64,000 bases of DNA from positions 5,518,001 through 5,582,000 of the forward strand of contig NC_073391.1 of assembly GCF_028641065.1 (NCBI RefSeq), written 5' to 3'. The position numbers and the translations under genes are program-made. This document shows positions 3,879 to 58,069 of this stretch, piece after piece. The DNA is from Leucoraja erinacea (Eukaryota). Every line of letters starts with the position of its first letter. The first letter of the stretch is position 1. Under the pieces are notes generated by a model. That model was not told where the DNA came from. It saw only the letters and a program-made list of their open reading frames with translations, and did no database searches.

Positions 3879-4296
3879 CTTCTTCTTGCATATGATGCGC
3901 ACAGCCTAAAGTTGTACGACAACTTGTTCTATTTGATCTTATTTGATTGTGCACACCAGGTTGATTGCATTAATCGAAACAGGGCAGACAACGTCAAGAG
4001 CGGAACTCGCTATCAAAACATGGAGGGGACGGGGAACACAATTTGTTGGTGGCCGCGTGCGCATGCGCACACTCACACACACGCGTGCGAGGCTTCGGAG
4101 GCTCAATCCAGTGCTAAATGCAGCTCAACTCTGCATGTCTCACCGGGTTAACCAGCAGCCCTGCCTGGACTGGCGGGATACCAGCATTGCTTCTCCGCGC
4201 TGGCCATATTTCCTGCAAGCCCAGGCAGGTTAACATGGCGGGAGAGGCAGAGTTGAGCTGGGTTTAGCACTGTTTCTCTGCGCTGGCTGTGGGCCT

Positions 4297-4329
<33 letters not shown>

Positions 4330-4673
4330 CGGGGGGGGGGGGGGGGGGGGGGGGCACTCGGGGACAGCGCCGGAGACCCATCCGGGATCGATCCTGCCTG
4401 CAGATGAGGCGCAGGTCTGTGCCATGTCTCCCTCCTCCAATCGCCACACTCTATCAGTCCCCCCCCCCCCCCCCTCCTCCCTCCTCCAATCATCGCGCAC
4501 TATATCCTCAGTCCCACCTCCACTGTCTCGCGGAAAGCGGAGATTTTAAAATATGGATCACAAAAACTTGGGGGGGATGACCCCCACCTCTCAAAATATG
4601 GGGGGGACGTGTCCCTTCTGGCTCCCCCGGGTTTTCCGCCCCGGAACACGTGAAGGTTGCAATCTCCCACCCC
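3879..4673 (-). mobile_element. Family A ribozyme-headed retroposon split by a nested hAT-type insertion
   Basis: 3879-3994 joined to 4644-4673 reconstitutes the element seen at 25844-25983. Confidence 0.85.
3995..4643. mobile_element. Non-autonomous hAT-type DNA transposon with poly-G/poly-C tracts and an internal hairpin
   Basis: Imperfect TIRs CAAGAGCGGAA / TTCCGCCCCG. Imperfect 8-bp TSD GACAACGT/GAACACGT derived from host GACCACGT. Confidence 0.7.
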
Positions 4674-4677
4674 ATAT

Positions 4678-6110
4678 GTAAGTAAGTAAGTAAGTTTATT
4701 GGCCAAGTATTCACATACAAGGAATTTGTCTTGGTGCTCCGCCCACAAGTAACAACATGACATACAGTGACAGTTACGGATGACTCAGAAAACACTAAAC
4801 ATTAATAATAATAAAACATTAATGATAAAACACAATTGATCAACTATGTGAACCAACAAAATACCAGATCAAAGGGAGGCTACAGATTTTTGGCTGTTGA
4901 GTAGAGCAACTACTCGTGGATAAAAACTATTTTTATGTCTGGCTGTGGCAGCTTTGACAATCCGGAGTCGCCTTCCAGAGGAAAGTGATTCAAAGAGTTT
5001 ATGGCCAGGGTGAGAGGGGTCAGAGATGATCTTGCCCGCTAACTTCCTGGCCCTTGCAGTGTACAGTTCATCAATGGAGGGAAGGTTGCAGCCAATAACC
5101 TTCTCTGCTGATCGGACGATTCGCTGCAGCCTCCAGGTGTCGTGCTTGGTGGCTGAGCCAAACCAGACCATGATGGAGAAGGTGAGAACAGACTCTATCT
5201 TGGCCGTGTAGAATTGGACCAGCATTGCCTGTGGCAGATTGTGCTTCCTCAGCTGCCGTAGGAAGTACATCCTCTGTTGTGCCTTTTTGACTGTGGAGTC
5301 GATGGTAGCCCCCTACTAAGGTCCTTGGAGATGATGGTTCCCAGGAACTTAAAAAACTCCACAGATGTGTGCGGTGAGGGGAGGGGGAGCTCTCCTAAAG
5401 TCTGCTATCGATTCCACTGTCTTAAGAGCATTGAGCTCTAGGTTGTTGCGTCGGCACCAGGACGCCAGCTGTGACACCTCCTGTCTGTAGGTAGATTCCT
5501 TCCCATCCTGGATCTGTCCAATCAGGGTTGTGTCATCCGCAAACTTGAGAAGTTTGACAGAGGTATCTGTGGAGGTGCAGTCGTTGGTGTAGAGAGAGTA
5601 GAGGAGAGGAGAGAGTACACAGCCTTGCGGTGCTCCTATGCTGAGCGTTTGCGCATCCGAGATGTGCTTTCCCAGTCTCACATGCTGCTTCCTGTCTGTC
5701 AGGAAGCTGGTGATCCACTGACAGAGGGGTTCAGGCACAGTCAACTCTGAAAGTTTGGAGTGTAGTAGCTCTGGCACAATGGTGTTGAATGCAGAGCTAT
5801 AATCAACAAACAGGATCCTCGCATAGGTCCCCTGGCGGTCCAGGTGCTGTAGGATGAAGTGCAGGCCCAGGTTGACTGCATCATCCACAGATCTATGGGC
5901 CCAATATACAAACTGCGGAGGATCCAGCAGGGAGTTGGTAATTATTTTCAGCCTGGCAGGCACAAGCCTTTCGAGTGTCATCATGACTACAGAGGTCAGT
6001 GCGACAAGCCTGTAGTTATTAAGACAAGTAATCCTTGCCTTTTTGGGTACAAGGACAATTGTGGAGACTTTGAAGCAGACATGGACTGTACATGTTTGCA
6101 AGGACTGATT
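4678..6110 (-). mobile_element. Rex1/Babar-type LINE, 5'-truncated, RT domain frameshifted
   Basis: ORFs 5349-6134 ([34 protein letters not shown]) and 4869-5270. (TTAC)n tail. Confidence 0.88.
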
Positions 6111-6365
6111 AAAAATGATGCAGATGTTTCTCATTTATAAATGGTGCGGAGCACACAAGGTAATATGCAAGTTTCAGCTCAGGAGAACACAGATAGGCGG
6201 CATTTCGGGTTGGGACCCTTCTTTAGGCTGATTGTGGGAGCTGGAAAAGAAAGCAGGAGGAGAGGCAGGACATGACAAAATGTGGCTGAACCTAAACCAA
6301 CACAGGTGTGAATTCATTAATAGGCAGATGGTTGGACGAAGGCCAGAGATGAAAAGATAAGTGTG

Positions 6366-17008: not shown

Positions 17009-18385
17009 GGTTCAAGTTCAAGTTCAAGTGAGTTTATTGTCATGTGTCCCTGTATAGGACAATGAAATTCTTGCTTTGCTTAAGCACGCAGAAAAAAATA
17101 GTAAGCATTTACTACAAAACAGATAAATGTGTCCATATACCATGATATAAATATCTACACACATGAATAAATAAACTGGTAAAGTGCAAATAACAGAAAG
17201 TGGTTATTAATAATCAGAGTTTTGTCCGAGCCAGGTTTAATAGCCTGATGGCTGAGGGGAAGTAGCTATTCCTGAACCTGGTTGTTGCAGTCTTCAGGCT
17301 CCTGTACCTTCTACCTGAATGTAGCAGGGAGATGAGTGCGTGGCCAGGATGGTGTGGGTCTTTGATGATACTGCCAGCCTTTTTGAGGCAGCGACTGCGA
17401 TAAATCCCCTCGATGGAAGGAAGGTCAGAGCCGATGATGGACTGGGCAGTGTTTACTACTTTTTGTAGTCTTTTCTTCTCCAGGGCGCTCAAATTGCCGA
17501 ACCAAGCCACGATGCAACCGGTCAGCATGCTCTCGACTGTGCACCTGTAGAAGTTAGAGAGAGTCTTCCTTGACAATCCGACTCTCCGTAATCTTCTCAG
17601 GAAAGTAGAGGCGCTGATGAGCTTTTTTGATAATTGTGTTAGTGTTCTCGGACCAGGAAAGATCTTCAGAGATGTGCACGCCCAGGAATTTGAAGTTCTT
17701 GACCCTTTCAACCATCGACCCATTGATATAAATGGGGCTGTGGGTCCCCCTCCTACTCCTTCCAAAGTTCACAATCAGTTTCTTGGTTTTGCTGGGGTTG
17801 AGGGCCAGGTTATTGCGCTGGCACCATATGGACAGTAGCTCGATCTCTCTTCTGTACTCTGACTCATCCCCATCAGTGATACGCCCCACAATAGTGGTGT
17901 CGTCAGCGAACTTGATGATGGAGTTCACACTGTGGTTCGCTACGCAGTCATGGGTATAGAATGAGTACAGCAGGGGGCTGAGCACGCAGCCTTGAGGTGC
18001 TCCCGTACTGATTGTTATTGAGGCTGACACATTTCCACCAATACGAACAGACTGTGGTCTGTGGATGAGGAAGTCGAGGATCCAGTTGCAGAGGGATGCG
18101 CAGAGACCCAGTTCTGCGAGTTTGCTAATCAGTTTGGAGGGGATGATTGTATTAAATGCCGAGCTGTAATCAATGAATAACAGCCTGACATATGAGTTTT
18201 TGTTGTCCAAGTGGTCCAAGAGCAGAGTGGAGGGCCAGCGAGATCGCATCCACCGTTGATCTGTTGTGGCGGTACGCGAACTGCAGTGGGTCCAGGTTTT
18301 TGTCGAGGTAGGAGTTGATTTGCTCTATGATCAACCTCTCAAAGCACTTCATCACCACTGGCGTCAGTGCCACTTGTCGATAGTC
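17009..18385 (-). mobile_element. Rex1/Babar-type LINE fragment
   Basis: ORFs 17554-18249 ([28 protein letters not shown]), 17214-17765 and 18170-18415. (TTGAAC)n tail. Confidence 0.88.
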
Positions 18386-25097: not shown

Positions 25098-25843
25098 TAC
25101 ATTATATACTGGGCTTTTAATCCCTTTCCTTTTTGATGTATTAACTCATATTTATTATTGTACGCAACAATTATTATGATTGTTCTTATCATTTCTTATT
25201 AACAACCATCTACAAACATTCCTCTTCATACATGCACCGGGCCCTGGATACTGCTAAGACCACGCTCATCTTTTACTGATACAGGAACACGTCAATGTAC
25301 CTGGAGATCTACTAGAGAAACTGGGATAAAATTGGGGTTAAAATAAAAACAAGAAAGATCAATCCTTGTGAAAATCAGGATCTTAATTTTAGCAGAACTC
25401 CCTATCTCTTAGTAATTGTGATTAGGGTTCTACTTCCTGTTATTTATTTTTTTTGCTTAATCTTCAACAGTCCATGATAACAGATATTCTGCATTTATGT
25501 ATTTTATTTTCTAGTCAGTGTCCTATTCAGTGGTGCAGGTCTGACCTGACAGAAGAATTATTTGTATTCCTTTTAATCATTTCCATGCTGTATACAATAT
25601 CAGCAAAGCTCGGGTGAAGTCTACTCTGTAAATGGCAATGCTAATGGTGTTATCAAGAGGGACACATGTCTCCCGTTAAATTGTCTGAGGTTTTCATTTA
25701 ACAAAGATGCATCTTACCATCCAACCAATGTGTGGATTTTTATTTCTCATATTTTTGGCTGAAATCATTTTGCTGATTTCACAGTCTCCTGAGTTATTGA
25801 ACAATTACTTTTGCCTTCTAACCTGATGACAGATCATCTTGAA

Positions 25844-25983
25844 TTCTTCTTCTTGCGCATGGCGTGCACAACCTCAAGTTGTAAAGTCAACTTGTTCTAT
25901 TTGATCTATTTGTTTGTGCACGTCGGGTTGATTGCATTAGTCGAAACAGGGTGGACCATGTGAAGGTTGCAATCTCCCACCCC
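25844..25983 (-). mobile_element. About 140-bp retroposon, family A: HDV-like ribozyme head, structured 3' end, (AAG)n tail
   Basis: Same 5' start GGGGTGG(G/A)AGATTGCAACC as the copies at 36986 and 4673. Tail reads CTTCTTCTT on the + strand. Possible degenerate 10-bp TSD ATCTTGAATT/ATGTGGAATT. Confidence 0.85.
25930..25983 (-). ncRNA. Minimal HDV/CPEB3-like ribozyme fold (family A)
   Basis: GGGGUGG GA GAUUGCA ACC UUCACAU GGU CCACCCU GU UUCGA CUAA UGCAAUC. 7-bp P1 with G1.U, 7-bp P2, 3-bp P3, 7-nt L3, J4/2 CUAA. Confidence 0.85.
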
Positions 25984-27084
25984 ATGTGGAATTGTTTAAT
26001 GAAGGTTTTCTCCCTACTGCTTAGTGGAAGAGAATGTTGTACATTAAGGGGCAGAACTAGAGGCATCACATCCACTGTAGCCACACTGCTAGAACTACAT
26101 AATGATCCTTCTGGTGACCGACCATTCTAAGTTTAGACATAGTCTTCCTCACAGTCGGGCGACTGAAGCAGGAGTCTATCTTATGGTCTTAAAGGTGGTA
26201 CCTGCACTTCCTGTTGGTGTTGAGTCCTAGAAATGGTTCTTTGCATTTTGGAGGCATTGAAAAGATATTCTGTGTCTCCAAAGCCATTTGTATAAAGAAC
26301 AAGTTATAATTGTGAGGTTCCACAAGAGTGGATGTCACCATGGAACACCATGCTGAAATTGTCCTTTCCAACACAACCTTTCCTACTGATACAATTTAGT
26401 TTAGTTTATTGTAACATGTACCGAGGTACTGTGAAATGCTATTGTTGCCTGCTAACCAGTCAGCAGAAAGACAATACGTGATTACAATCGAGTCACTTAC
26501 AGTGTATAGATACATGATAAGGGAATAACGTTTAGTGCAAGGTAATGCCAACAAAATCCGATCATGGATAGTCTGAGGGTCACCAATGAAGTGTTTAGTT
26601 CAGGACTGCTCTCTGGTTGTGGTAGGATGGTTCAGTTGCCTAATGACAGCTGGGAAGAAACTGTCCCTGAATCTGGCGGTGTGCGTTTTCACACTTCTAT
26701 ACCTTTTGCCTGATGGGAGAAGAGTTGTCAGTTTTCACAGTTCTCAGCATGCAGCATCGCAGGTGTAGTTTTGAGTCTAGTTCAATTTCTTAAACAAGCG
26801 ACAGACCTTTGACTGCAGAAGAGTGATGTTGTGTGTGAGTAGATGCTGCAGGGATGGGAGAGTGCTCCAGAGGCAGAGAGATTTGGTGAACAATGAAACA
26901 ACTACTGATAACTTCTCTCAGTGTCTGATACATTGACAGTGCCTGATAGGATTCAAGACAAGCCTTGTATGATATGTGCATAGAATTACATCCCTGAATT
27001 CAGTGCAAGCCTCTAAGTTAAGTTAAAGTCCTATGATATACATATGTATATATTAAGGAAGTATGATCTAAAACATACACTCAC

Positions 27085-35655: not shown

Positions 35656-35828
35656 CTTCTTCTTATCGAGTCCACACACAGGATTAGAAGTTGTTCAGCC
35701 AGAGCTGAACACACCTCTCGGCTTCTGCATAATGGTGTCTGTCTTGTCGCTTCTTGTGCTTCTTGTGCGTGGTGGTGGAAAGATTGGTGGAAACAGGGCC
35801 GTGACGTGAACGCTCTTTCCTTGACCCC
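35656..35828 (-). mobile_element. 173-bp retroposon, family B: HDV-like ribozyme head and (AAG)n tail
   Basis: Perfect 11-bp TSD GGTAGGTGGAT at 35645-35655 and 35829-35839. Minus-strand tail GATAAGAAGAAG. A second copy lies at 51817-51986. Confidence 0.9.
35777..35828 (-). ncRNA. Minimal HDV/CPEB3-like ribozyme fold (family B)
   Basis: GGGGUC AA GGAAAGA GCG UUCACGU CAC GGCCCU GU UUCCA CCAA UCUUUCC. P1 GGGGUC/GGCCCU with G1.U, P2 GGAAAGA/UCUUUCC, P3 GCG/C(A)C, L3 UUCACGU, C-containing J4/2. Confidence 0.8.
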
Positions 35829-36740: not shown

Positions 36741-36985
36741 AGTATTTATGGTCAGGGAGGGAGTTGGTGTTCGGAATGCATCAGATGGCTTAATGCAATG
36801 TGTTGGTGACTGGACAAGGTTGATGAGCCCGTGAGGGGCTATAGATCAATGCTTAGGGCAGAAGGGGAGACACCATAAATAAATGCTTTAAAATACATCC
36901 ACCTGAGACTTTTTTCAAAGCTAGCCTGCAACCTATTCAAGAAGGTTATTTTAATCTGTTATAAAGCAGGCTTCACAGAAACAGT

Positions 36986-37121
36986 GGGGTGGAAGATTGC
37001 AACCTTCACTTGGTCCACCCTGTTGAATGCAATCAACCTGGCGTGCTCAATCAAATAAGATCAAATAGAACAAGTTGTCCTACAACTTTAGGCTGTGCAC
37101 GCCATACTTAAGAAGAAGAAG
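36986..37121 (+). mobile_element. Family A ribozyme-headed retroposon, full length, J4/2 region deleted
   Basis: TSD ACAGAAACAGT(GG) at 36975-36987 and 37122-37134. Tail AAGAAGAAGAAG. Confidence 0.88.
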
Positions 37122-37834
37122 ACAGAAACAGTGGACGCCTTCTTCTACATGTGTGGATTGTGGGCAGCAGTTTTTGCATCCATGACTAAGACACAGAAAA
37201 CTTTGCCCTGAAGCCAGTAAGCATGCTTTGTTTTTTTTGTTAGAGAAACAGTGCGGAAACAAGCCATTCAGCCCACTGAAGTTTGAAGTTTTTGTATGCT
37301 AACCTATCAGTTACTTATCAGTTAGTTACAGTTGCAACTTACAGTATCAGTTATTGCTCTGTTACTTATCAGTTTTCAAGTTTTTTTACATATAGAAATT
37401 TTACCATGTGGAACACAGAACCGAAATACTACACACTCAGGTTACTAGGCAGTTCAACAAAGCAGAAAACAATCATCTGAGTGAATGAATGAATGATATT
37501 CTATTATCACATGTGACATGTCACAGTGAAATTCTTCATTTTGCGTACTATACACAAAATATGCAAAGAGTTGCCGTGTATATAACGCCATAAGAGTTGT
37601 AAAGTGCTCAATGTAGTCCCAGTGGTCCCTCTTTGATCTATCGGTGGCCCCTCACGGCCGTTCCTCCTTTGTTCTCTTGGCGGTACGTCCTGCACTAGCT
37701 ACTGCCATCCACCGTGGACCTGCCCGACCTCTGGCACTCACAGATTTACTCGACGTGCATGGAGCATTTGATTCTAAAAATGTCAGATACTGGTTGGTAC
37801 TTCTGGCTAATATATCGGTACCAAAAAATCCTCT

Positions 37835-50898: not shown

Positions 50899-51816
50899 GT
50901 ACAAGAGAGGTGCCAGAAGACTGGAGGGTGGCAAATGTTGTACCTCTTTTCAAGAAGGGCTGCAGGGAAAATGCTGGGAACTATAGGCCTGTGAGCTTAA
51001 CATCTGTAGTTGGTAACTTACTGGAGAGTATTCTGAGGAATAGGATCATTTGGATGGGCAAAGGCTGATTAGGGATAGTCAGCATGGTTTTGTATGTGGG
51101 AGGTTGTGTCTCACAAAACTGATTAATTTTTTGAAGACTCGACCAAAAAGGTTGATGTAGATGTTGTGTACATGGACTTCAGCAAGGCGTTCGACAAGGT
51201 ACATGGTGGACTGCTCTGGAAGGTTAGATCGCATGAGATCCAAGGAGAGATAGCTGAATTAATAGCAAATTGGCTCCATGGAAGGAAGCAGAGGGTAATG
51301 GTGGGAGGTTGCTTCTCAGACTGGAGGCCTGTGACTAGTGGTGTGCCTCAGGGTTCCGGTGCTGGGCCCGTTACTGTTTGTCACCTAGATCAATGATTTG
51401 TATTAGAACATACAGGGCAAGATTCACAAGTTTGCTGATGATACAAAAGTGAGTGGTTTTGCAAATAGCGAAGATGGTTGTGAAAGTTTGCAGCAGGATC
51501 TGGATCGATTGGCCAGGTGGGCAGAGGAAGGATTAATGGAATTTAATACAGAGAAGTGTGAGGTGTTGCATTTTGAGAAATCAAACAAGTGCAGGACCTA
51601 CACAGTAAATGGTGGGCCTCTGGGTAATGTTGTAGAGCAGAGGGATCTAGGAGTGCAGGTGCATTGGTTCCTTGAAGGTCAAGTCTCAGGTAGATAAGAT
51701 GGTCAAAAAGGCTTTTGGCCTTCATCAGTCAGAGTATTGAGTATAGAAGTTGGAAGGTCAAGTTGCAGTTGGAAAAGACGTTGGTGAGACCGCATTTAGA
51801 ATATTTTGTTCAGTTC
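50899..51816 (+). mobile_element. CR1 LINE RT fragment
   Basis: VPEDWRVANVVPLFKKG, YMDFSKAFDKV, VTSGVPQGS and KFADDTK. Confidence 0.85.
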
Positions 51817-51986
51817 GGTCAAGGAAAGAGCGTTCACGTCGCGGCCCTGTTTCCACCAATGTCTCCACCACAACGCACAACAAGCACAAGAAGCGACAAG
51901 GCAGACACCATTGTATGCAGAAGCCGAGAAGTGTGTTCAGCTCTGGCTGAATCTCTTCTAATCTTGTGTGTGGACTTGATATGAAG
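51817..51986 (+). mobile_element. Second copy of family B ribozyme-headed retroposon, inserted in a CR1 LINE
   Basis: GGTCAAGGAAAGAGCGTTCACGTCGCGGCCCTGTTTCCACCAAT... is colinear with the reverse complement of 35656-35828. Flanked by (C/T)AGTTC at 51811-16 and 51987-92. Confidence 0.85.
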
Positions 51987-57447: not shown

Positions 57448-58069
57448 ACCTCTTGTCTTGTCTCCTAATTCAAAATAGACCTCCAAACTAGTACTAAAAT
57501 GCTGCATTGTTTATATTTGCACTTATCTGAAGCTGAATGAATACAGAATAGGTAAGATGCTACAGTATAGCAAGATCCCAACTAACAATTAACATAAAAT
57601 GCCCCAATACAAAGAGATGTGACTTGAGGGTTGTCTGCCTTTCAGAATTGGGGAGGACCTCTGCCAGCAGGAATACACTCTGATTGATGAATGATTGGGT
57701 GGGAACACCTGACTTTGGTATAGATCTGCTTGAGAAGATGGGAATTGGCAAGTTGACTCAAGATGCTTGGGAGAGCAAGAGTGTCTAGGGAGAGTTCATG
57801 TCATGATTAGCTGGTTTTTGGTGAACATGGATATGAGGCATGTGCATTAAGATATGATGTATGGTGAGAGTTTCAAGCCACAGAGCAAATGAAGTCATTG
57901 ATTAACCAGTAATTATCAGAAAGGCACAGGCAGCATATAAGTGTTTGAAATGGATGAAATAAAGTAATTCTTCTTCTTCTTCTTTGGAAAGTCTTGTTTA
58001 AAACAATAGTTTTGTCCCATTTGAGACTTTCACCAGTTGAATAGTCTTGAGGAAAGAGAAGTTGGACCC

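Follow-up and report, generated by a model that had tools for sequence, protein, structure and literature searches.

A high-copy skate retroposon family with a putative minimal HDV-like ribozyme at its 5′ end

How does a short mobile element that appears to lack a promoter of its own obtain an RNA with a fixed first base? This question is raised by a 140-nt repeat at positions 25844-25983 (minus strand) of a 64,000-nt stretch of the Leucoraja erinacea genome (assembly GCF_028641065.1, contig NC_073391.1, positions 5,518,001 to 5,582,000; hereafter the window). The original prediction, made from the letters alone, had proposed that this repeat belongs to a retroposon family headed by a self-cleaving ribozyme. 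We refer to it as family A, to its copies in the window as c1, c2 and c3 (c2 being the copy above), and to a second, sister family in the same window as family B. The reading that we favour, to which we assign a probability of roughly 0.8, is that family A is a non-autonomous retroposon beginning with a minimal ribozyme like that of hepatitis delta virus (HDV), transcribed by read-through and copied by the machinery of a long interspersed nuclear element (LINE).

Fold of the element head

The head of c2 (25930-25983 on the minus strand, 54 nt) was numbered from the first base of the element, G1, so that the position in the head equals 25984 minus the coordinate. Its strands follow one another in the order of an HDV-like nested double pseudoknot, with a 7-bp P1, a 7-bp P2 and a 3-bp P3 that contain no mismatch (Table 1). 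The originally proposed parse of the 54 nt (P1, P2, P3, J4/2 CUAA and a vestige of P4) held for c2, where it is backed by a structural descriptor and by covariation with family B. The descriptor asked for a 7-bp P1 with a G1·U pair, a P2 of 6-8 bp and a 3-bp P3, with no mismatches allowed, and in addition for L3 to read U-N-C..., for a G to follow the 3′ strand of P1 (P1′) and for J4/2 to read C-N-R-A. Over both strands of the window (128 kb) it matched the c2 locus only, and there were no matches in 20 dinucleotide shuffles; as the descriptor was composed after the element had been seen, this shuffle control is supportive and not blind.

Features of the HDV class could also be followed at the level of single bases. 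G1 pairs with U36, and the diverse flanks upstream of the element are as expected if there is no sequence requirement on that side. The putative catalytic cytosine, C44, opens J4/2 both in c2 and in the family majority. In the HDV ribozyme, U20 and G25 of L3 (HDV numbering) form a pair, and the L3 G together with the L3 U holds the catalytic metal. The majority L3 of family A, UUCACGU, has the U...G and a C able to pair with J1/4, and is followed, after P1′, by G37; the candidate P1.1 is the pair between C22 of L3 and G37, a single invariant pair, so that covariation is uninformative here. A P4 helix was not found, the space from G37 to C44 being taken up by UUUCGA alone. Because P4 is dispensable in minimal ribozymes (PMC10879173), we regard family A as a probable minimal variant, which the lack of this helix does not exclude from the HDV-like class.

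The strongest evidence within the window that it is probably the fold, and not the sequence, which is kept comes from covariation with family B. This family was retrieved by the L3 core and CCCTG alone, with no reference to P2. Its head can be parsed into GGGGUC, AA, GGAAAGA, GCG, UUCACGU and CGC in the 5′ part, and GGCCCU, GUUUCCA, CCAA and UCUUUCC in the 3′ part. Between families A and B there are eight compensatory pair changes (pair 6 in P1, pairs 2-6 in P2, and pairs 1 and 3 in P3); the two have the same L3, and the stretch G-UUUC-N-AC-N-AA is conserved. Pairs were counted by coordinates, and a MAFFT alignment of the heads was not used, since it misregisters the 6-bp P1 of family B and a deletion in c3. 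Because family B was recognised without P2, its perfect 7-bp P2 is an independent test, and we estimate the chance of finding it at about 0.375^7. Taken together, complementarity within the head and covariation between the families argue strongly for the predicted fold.

Table 1. Coordinates of the features discussed, numbered along the window
Feature	Positions	Strand	Remarks
P1 5′ strand, GGGGUGG	25977-25983	-	G1 = 25983 = first base of the element; predicted cleavage 5′ of G1
J1/2 of c2, GA	between P1 5′ strand and P2 5′ strand	-	
P2 5′ strand, GAUUGCA	25968-25974	-	
P3 5′ strand, ACC	25965-25967	-	
L3 of c2, UUCACAU	25958-25964	-	position 25 = coordinate 25959; family majority UUCACGU
P3 3′ strand, GGU	25955-25957	-	
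P1 3′ strand, CCACCCU	25948-25954	-	majority CCGCCCU; U36 makes the G1·U wobble
J1/4, G37 then UUUCGA	25941-25947	-	6-nt linker or 1-bp vestige replacing P4
J4/2, CUAA	25937-25940	-	putative catalytic C44 = 25940
P2 3′ strand, UGCAAUC	25930-25936	-	
Family A copy c2	25844-25983	-	140 nt, made up of a putative ribozyme head, a structured body and a terminal (GAA)3
Body of c2	25853-25929	-	closing stem (GCGUGCAC / GUGCACGC type) around a 7-bp hairpin (AAGUUG... / ...CAACUU)
(GAA)3 3′ tail of c2	25844-25852	-	
Family A copy c3	36986-37121	+	136 nt; head with G25U and a 5-nt deletion removing C44
Family A copy c1, whole	3879-4673	-	split at the junction of ribozyme positions 27 and 28
Family A copy c1, 5′ piece	4647-4673	-	ribozyme positions 1-27
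Family A copy c1, 3′ piece	3879-3989	-	position 28 to tail; P1′ CUGCCCU, J4/2 UUAA
Insertion splitting c1	3990-4646	.	about 657 bp, unrelated
Family B copy	35656-35828	-	
Family B copy	51815-51986	+	starts TC, not GG; two P2 mismatches; P3 GCG/CGC intact
LINE reverse transcriptase fragment	5349-6134	-	Pfam RVT_1 E = 3e-27; (CTTA)n tail at about 4674-4700
LINE reverse transcriptase fragment	17554-18249	-	Pfam RVT_1 E = 4e-22; (CTTGAA)n tail at about 17010-17035

Element boundaries, RNA 5′ ends and proposed mechanism

The three predicted copies were all recovered, and similarity among them starts at the identical GGGGTGG, at G1, with unrelated DNA upstream of each; sensitive blastn found no further family A copy in the window. 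Identity is 85% between c2 and c3 and about 95% between c1 and c3, and all three copies terminate in (GAA)3. The position predicted for c1 was right, but the copy is not continuous, being split by an unrelated insertion. The predicted share of the ribozyme in the element (about 40%) agrees with the 54 of 140 nt (39%) in c2. Copy c3 is flanked by a target-site duplication (TSD) of 11-13 bp, ACAGAAACAGT, possibly extended by GG, at 36975-36985 and 37122-37132, c1 has an approximate one, TTACTTA(C)AT, and in family B an 11-bp TSD begins exactly at G1 of that family. In both families the repeat boundary coincides with the predicted cleavage site to the base, and both have (GAA)n tails, dispersed copies and no open reading frame (ORF).

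Family A thus displays variable TSDs, a simple-repeat tail, dispersal and the lack of an ORF, the properties of a LINE-dependent non-autonomous retroposon, and the claim that it is a retroposon is borne out by the TSDs of c3 and family B along with these other properties. Heads of the type transcribed by RNA polymerase III (Pol III), derived from tRNA, 7SL or 5S RNA, were not found: ARAGORN reported no tRNA-like genes and Rfam no match at gathering score in the whole 64-kb window. A classical short interspersed nuclear element (SINE) with a Pol III head was therefore ruled out for family A, the 5′ head being a ribozyme fold instead. These data support the description of family A as a LINE-dependent non-autonomous retroposon of about 136 nt without a promoter of its own.

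Public data, consisting of two runs of raw RNA reads and two sets of contigs, were aligned to positions 25744-26083 at 85% likeness. They include X24, an oligo-dT RNA-seq run under the same species label, X21, standard polyA RNA from a related species (organism D), and X1, DNA contigs of the same species. In X24, 532 reads had loose ends starting right after 25983, that is at G1, with an unmatched part of median 25 nt. The consensus of these loose ends, CCCATGTACTCTGCGTTGATAC, is the reverse complement of AAGCAGTGGTATCAACGCAGAGTACATGGG, the SMART template-switch oligo (TSO), a string that is present in 80 papers and is named as the TSO in PMC11846981, and hence the cDNAs ended at G1 and then switched to the oligo. 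The usual artefact of strand invasion at the Gs of the element itself would give a run of only 3-4 Gs, and was not the cause, because the GGG of the oligo adds to the four Gs of the element. No TSO-type signal was seen at the (GAA)n end in X24, nor in X21. RNA 5′ ends of family A lie at G1, the predicted cleavage site.

Such ends might also be transcription starts from an internal Pol III or Pol II promoter, the fold then serving reverse transcriptase binding or 5′ protection. The oligo-joined reads show that RNAs start at G1, not how this end arose, and the ribozyme region of L1Tc acts also as a promoter (PMC3383444). However, no tRNA-like, 7SL or 5S head was found in the window, and many transcripts enter the element from upstream flanks. 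Moreover, the conserved positions are those that HDV-type catalysis needs (G1·U, the U...G of L3 and the first C of J4/2), and the variable positions are those known to be free in the HDV-type fold. We consider an origin of the G1 ends by transcription start improbable.

In the ribozyme reading, copies lying within host transcription units would be transcribed as passengers; many RNA reads indeed extend beyond the element into flanks of diverse sequence. The 54-nt head would adopt a double pseudoknot of the HDV-like type, minimal and with hardly any P4, around a core of the CPEB3 type (L3 UUCACGU, J4/2 C-N-A-A), and the transcript would be cut immediately 5′ of G1, freeing an RNA that starts with G1. 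The G1 ends of this step are observed, and its chemistry is presumed. The body and the single-stranded (GAA)n tail would then be bound by the reverse transcriptase of a partner LINE, and target-primed reverse transcription would proceed to the very 5′ end, in agreement with the observed TSDs and the constant start of the DNA copies at G1. Because the RNA would be copied through to G1, each new copy would have a complete ribozyme. Source copies would be selected for the ribozyme, and inserted copies would decay afterwards; passenger transcription of many copies fits a family of this kind.

The body is the presumed recognition module in this scheme. In c1, c2 and c3 alike its minimum free energy (MFE) structure is a closing stem around a 7-bp hairpin, with z values of -2.0 to -2.7, and it is followed by the unpaired (GAA)n. 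The closing stem of c1 carries a double change from C-G to U-A, and the longer body of family B has the same architecture.

Several observations weigh against the ribozyme-headed retroposon. The MFE structure computed with ViennaRNA recovered P1 and P3 of the head with z = -0.02, the nested part being no stabler than shuffles, a value made uninformative by the inability of ViennaRNA to score pseudoknots. Searches of Rfam by E-value with c3 and c2 gave only noise, and no HDV-like or CPEB3 model matched family A even at E<=10. The 5′-end evidence comes from the loose-end table only: the consensus of the loose ends has an agreement of 0.42, oligo-bearing reads being a plurality of the 532 that cannot be counted exactly, and within the G run the end can be placed only to 1-3 nt. 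The molecule-end table shows no pile-up at G1 in either RNA run, and molecules that simply begin at G1 amount to under a fifth, with none in X21. At least 605 further reads of X24 and all boundary reads of X21 continue into diverse AT-rich flanks; since so many reads cross G1, most copies are uncleaved passengers, or cleavage is inefficient. Template-switch junctions, in turn, cannot separate a cleaved 5′-OH end from a transcription start. As for the retroposition, the flanks of c2 itself contain no recognisable TSD, and no partner LINE was found in the window by a scan for (GAA)n tails, by sensitive blastn with the bodies of families A and B, or by Pfam searches of ORFs of at least 150 aa.

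The missing Rfam match, the near absence of P4 and the unremarkable nested fold energy would also suit an ordinary short repeat whose resemblance to HDV-like ribozymes is a matter of chance. This explanation is at odds with the result of the descriptor (none of 20 shuffles), with the eight compensatory changes in family B, with the repeat boundary at the predicted cleavage site to the base in both families, and with the match between the family B head and the Rfam model of the CPEB3 ribozyme (20.9 bits, E = 8e-4), and we give it hardly any credence.

Compatible with the mechanism that we favour is the possibility that family A arose by internal deletion from an autonomous LINE with the same 5′ ribozyme and 3′ module. 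Precedents are the R2-derived short internally deleted elements (SIDEs; PMC3414825) and L1Tc/NARTc (PMC3383444), and families A and B share their architecture and (GAA)n end, as expected if both use one LINE lineage. Set against this, the window contains no LINE whose head or tail is related, and both reverse transcriptase fragments end in other repeats; such a descent seems to us a possibility to be kept in mind, with the odds somewhat against it. As candidates for the partner LINE, the two fragments were ruled out by their tails, (CTTA)n and (CTTGAA)n rather than (GAA)n. The insertion point of c1 coincides with the (CTTA)n tail of the fragment at 5349-6134. On the minus strand, at 57968-57982, there is a (GAA)5 run whose preceding sequence has no relation to family A or family B; it might be the end of a different element that uses the same 3′ repeat.

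Sequence variation, abundance and state of the copies

The reads aligned to family A allowed us to follow single positions of the head across the family. Position 25 in L3 is G in 85-88% of reads, which gives the majority L3 UUCACGU, and A25 of c2 is probably a CpG decay product. The cytosine at position 44 is present in about 90-99% of reads, depending on the run, with C-to-U in 1.4-3% of the reads of organism A and in 5-10% of those of the related species. The original prediction had made its claim depend on a consensus that retains the L3 G and the J4/2 C, and both are retained. In P1′, position 32 is G in 51-67% of reads and otherwise A, either of which pairs with U5, and the variants listed at positions 31 and 36 preserve pairing as well (U36-to-C in about 5% of RNA reads). 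The variation between CCACCCU and CCGCCCU that had been described for P1′ does keep the pairing, but no copy in the window reads CCGCCCU, two having CCACCCU and one CUGCCCU. As for the linkers, position 8 in J1/2 is G or A, and position 45 in J4/2 is U, G or A, with G, which defines a CGAA subfamily, in 27-38% in X24 and X1. Among the variants listed, none at 5% or more falls in the 5′ strand of P1 or in the strands of P2 and P3, and common variation at the subfamily level is confined to linkers (8, 45) or preserves pairs (31, 32, 36). This pattern suggests selection on source copies.

A very high copy number had been proposed from the density of copies in the window, and the read data bear this out. 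In X1 the summed contig depth was 2.09 million over head positions 25-36, compared with 21.6 in the unique flanks, a ratio (about 10^5-fold) that is not itself a copy number; the window density of 3 copies in 64 kb leads to a figure of the same order. Contig pieces aligned to family A numbered about 7,000, and their flanks are diverse. The family has roughly 10^4-10^5 copies in the genome.

Most RNA and DNA reads lose their alignment to c2 at 25888, where the hairpin region of this copy, GACTTTAC, departs from the GTCCAAC / GTCCTAC type that the majority of the family has. Because c2 diverges at this point, the roughly 30-fold lower depth over the tail is largely an alignment effect, and is no proof that heads outnumber tails. 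Five other coded organisms (runs X3-X14 and X21) contain 20-48% of the sampled words of a 3-kb stretch around c2. RNA of organism D (X21) carries family A with nearly the same variant spectrum, and therefore the family predates the split of these relatives.

The copies of the window are themselves damaged. As predicted, c2 keeps C44 and has a G-to-A change in L3 (G25A), by which it is plausibly impaired. The head description given for all three copies applies to c2 and fails for the others, since c3 has a U at L3 position 25 and lacks C44, which was removed by the 5-nt deletion, and c1 has a U in place of C44, in addition to C31U and the 657-bp insertion. A change of the catalytic C to U inactivates the theta ribozyme (PMC10879173). 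As all three copies carry lesions in the core, activity is unlikely in c1, c2 and c3, and the finding concerns the family and not the c2 locus. The insertion that splits c1 contains a run of some 60 Gs (4296-4355), runs rich in C and, at 4109-4156 / 4225-4272, an internal inverted repeat of 48 nt; CTMTCAAAAYATGGRGGGGACG motifs recur near its two ends.

Relation to known ribozymes and retroelements

HDV-like ribozymes are established at the 5′ end of elements without long terminal repeats (non-LTR elements), namely R2, RTE, Baggins and L1Tc, the non-autonomous NARTc and the R2 SIDEs (PMC6765202, PMC8256844, PMC3414825, PMC3383444), and hence the working principle of family A is not new. With these elements and with SIDER it shares the place of the ribozyme at the extreme 5′ end, where cleavage upstream of G1 would leave the whole catalytic core on the element RNA, and it would likewise share the dependence on read-through and target-primed reverse transcription. 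Unlike the members of this group, family A is 136-140 nt long with no coding remnant, and resides in a vertebrate at an order of 10^4-10^5 copies. Its ribozyme has 54 nt and almost no P4, whereas that of R2 has about 184 nt and that of L1Tc 77 nt. Its insertions are dispersed and not specific to ribosomal DNA, and it has no known autonomous partner.

Another group of short, non-autonomous elements with ribozyme-trimmed RNA comprises the hammerhead SINE-like elements of schistosomes and the animal retrozymes and Penelope-derived mini-elements (PMC6765202, PMC7229834); in family A such trimming is putative. There the ribozyme is a hammerhead, and the elements frequently occur in tandem or circularise, with Pol III as their possible polymerase, whereas family A is solitary with a 5′-terminal ribozyme of the HDV-like class. 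HDV-like ribozymes without P4 are known from metagenomes and phages, with the catalytic C as the first base of J4/2, and their origin has been called open (PMC10879173). Family A has the same P4-less double pseudoknot and the same place of the putative catalytic C as these minimal ribozymes and the theta ribozymes of gut phages; those occur in microbiome and phage DNA, often by tRNAs and not as retroposon heads, whereas family A is mobile in a vertebrate nuclear genome.

What sets family A apart is its form: a 54-nt P4-less core in an element of 136-140 nt in total, in a vertebrate host and at very high copy number. In the literature searched we found no SINE-sized vertebrate element in which a ribozyme lacking P4 is joined to a small recognition module at the 3′ side and to a tail of (GAA)n, and nothing relevant on HDV-like ribozymes or ribozyme-headed SINEs in skates, sharks or cartilaginous fish. 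Exact-pattern scans of public metagenome contigs for copies or relatives gave no matches, in a collection that is not expected to contain this genome. Family A would provide a eukaryotic home for minimal HDV-like ribozymes, a natural test of how a 5′ end is defined without a promoter, and a natural sequence-function set of roughly 10^4-10^5 variants of a 54-nt ribozyme. If copies are active, the transcription units of one vertebrate genome would contain potential sites of self-cleavage in a number of the order of 10^5, and copies in introns or untranslated regions could cut host transcripts.

The closest resemblance in sequence is to the mammalian CPEB3 ribozyme (RF00622), which has the same L3 heptamer, UUCACGU, as the family A majority, both in the consensus of the Rfam model and in a primer for the mouse Cpeb3 ribozyme (PMC10919898). 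Common to both are also a P1 starting with GGGG, a single G after P1′ as the candidate P1.1 partner, and a J4/2 of the form C-N-A-A. In CPEB3, J4/2 reads CGAA, as in the family A subfamily described above. The sequences of P2 and P3 are unrelated and P4 is missing in family A, and CPEB3 is a single conserved intronic locus of mammals, whereas family A is a mobile family. Neither family is a member of RF00622, as family A gave no match and the match of the family B head (35795-35828, minus strand) lies under the 35-bit gathering score and covers only the 5′ half of the model, P1-P3-L3-P3′-P1′. Because family A shares the L3 and the junctions of family B, we take CPEB3 as the closest named ribozyme by core sequence.

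Families A and B might represent an old vertebrate lineage with a CPEB3-type head, of which the single-copy intronic CPEB3 ribozyme of mammals would be a domesticated head. We hold this idea to be unlikely, if still worth pursuing; were it true, the CPEB3 ribozyme would for the first time have a concrete source, and family B offers a testable link to its origin. The family B copy at 51815-51986 contains a 15-mer, GTTCACGTCGCGGCC, that is identical to the mouse Cpeb3 ribozyme primer (PMC10919898).
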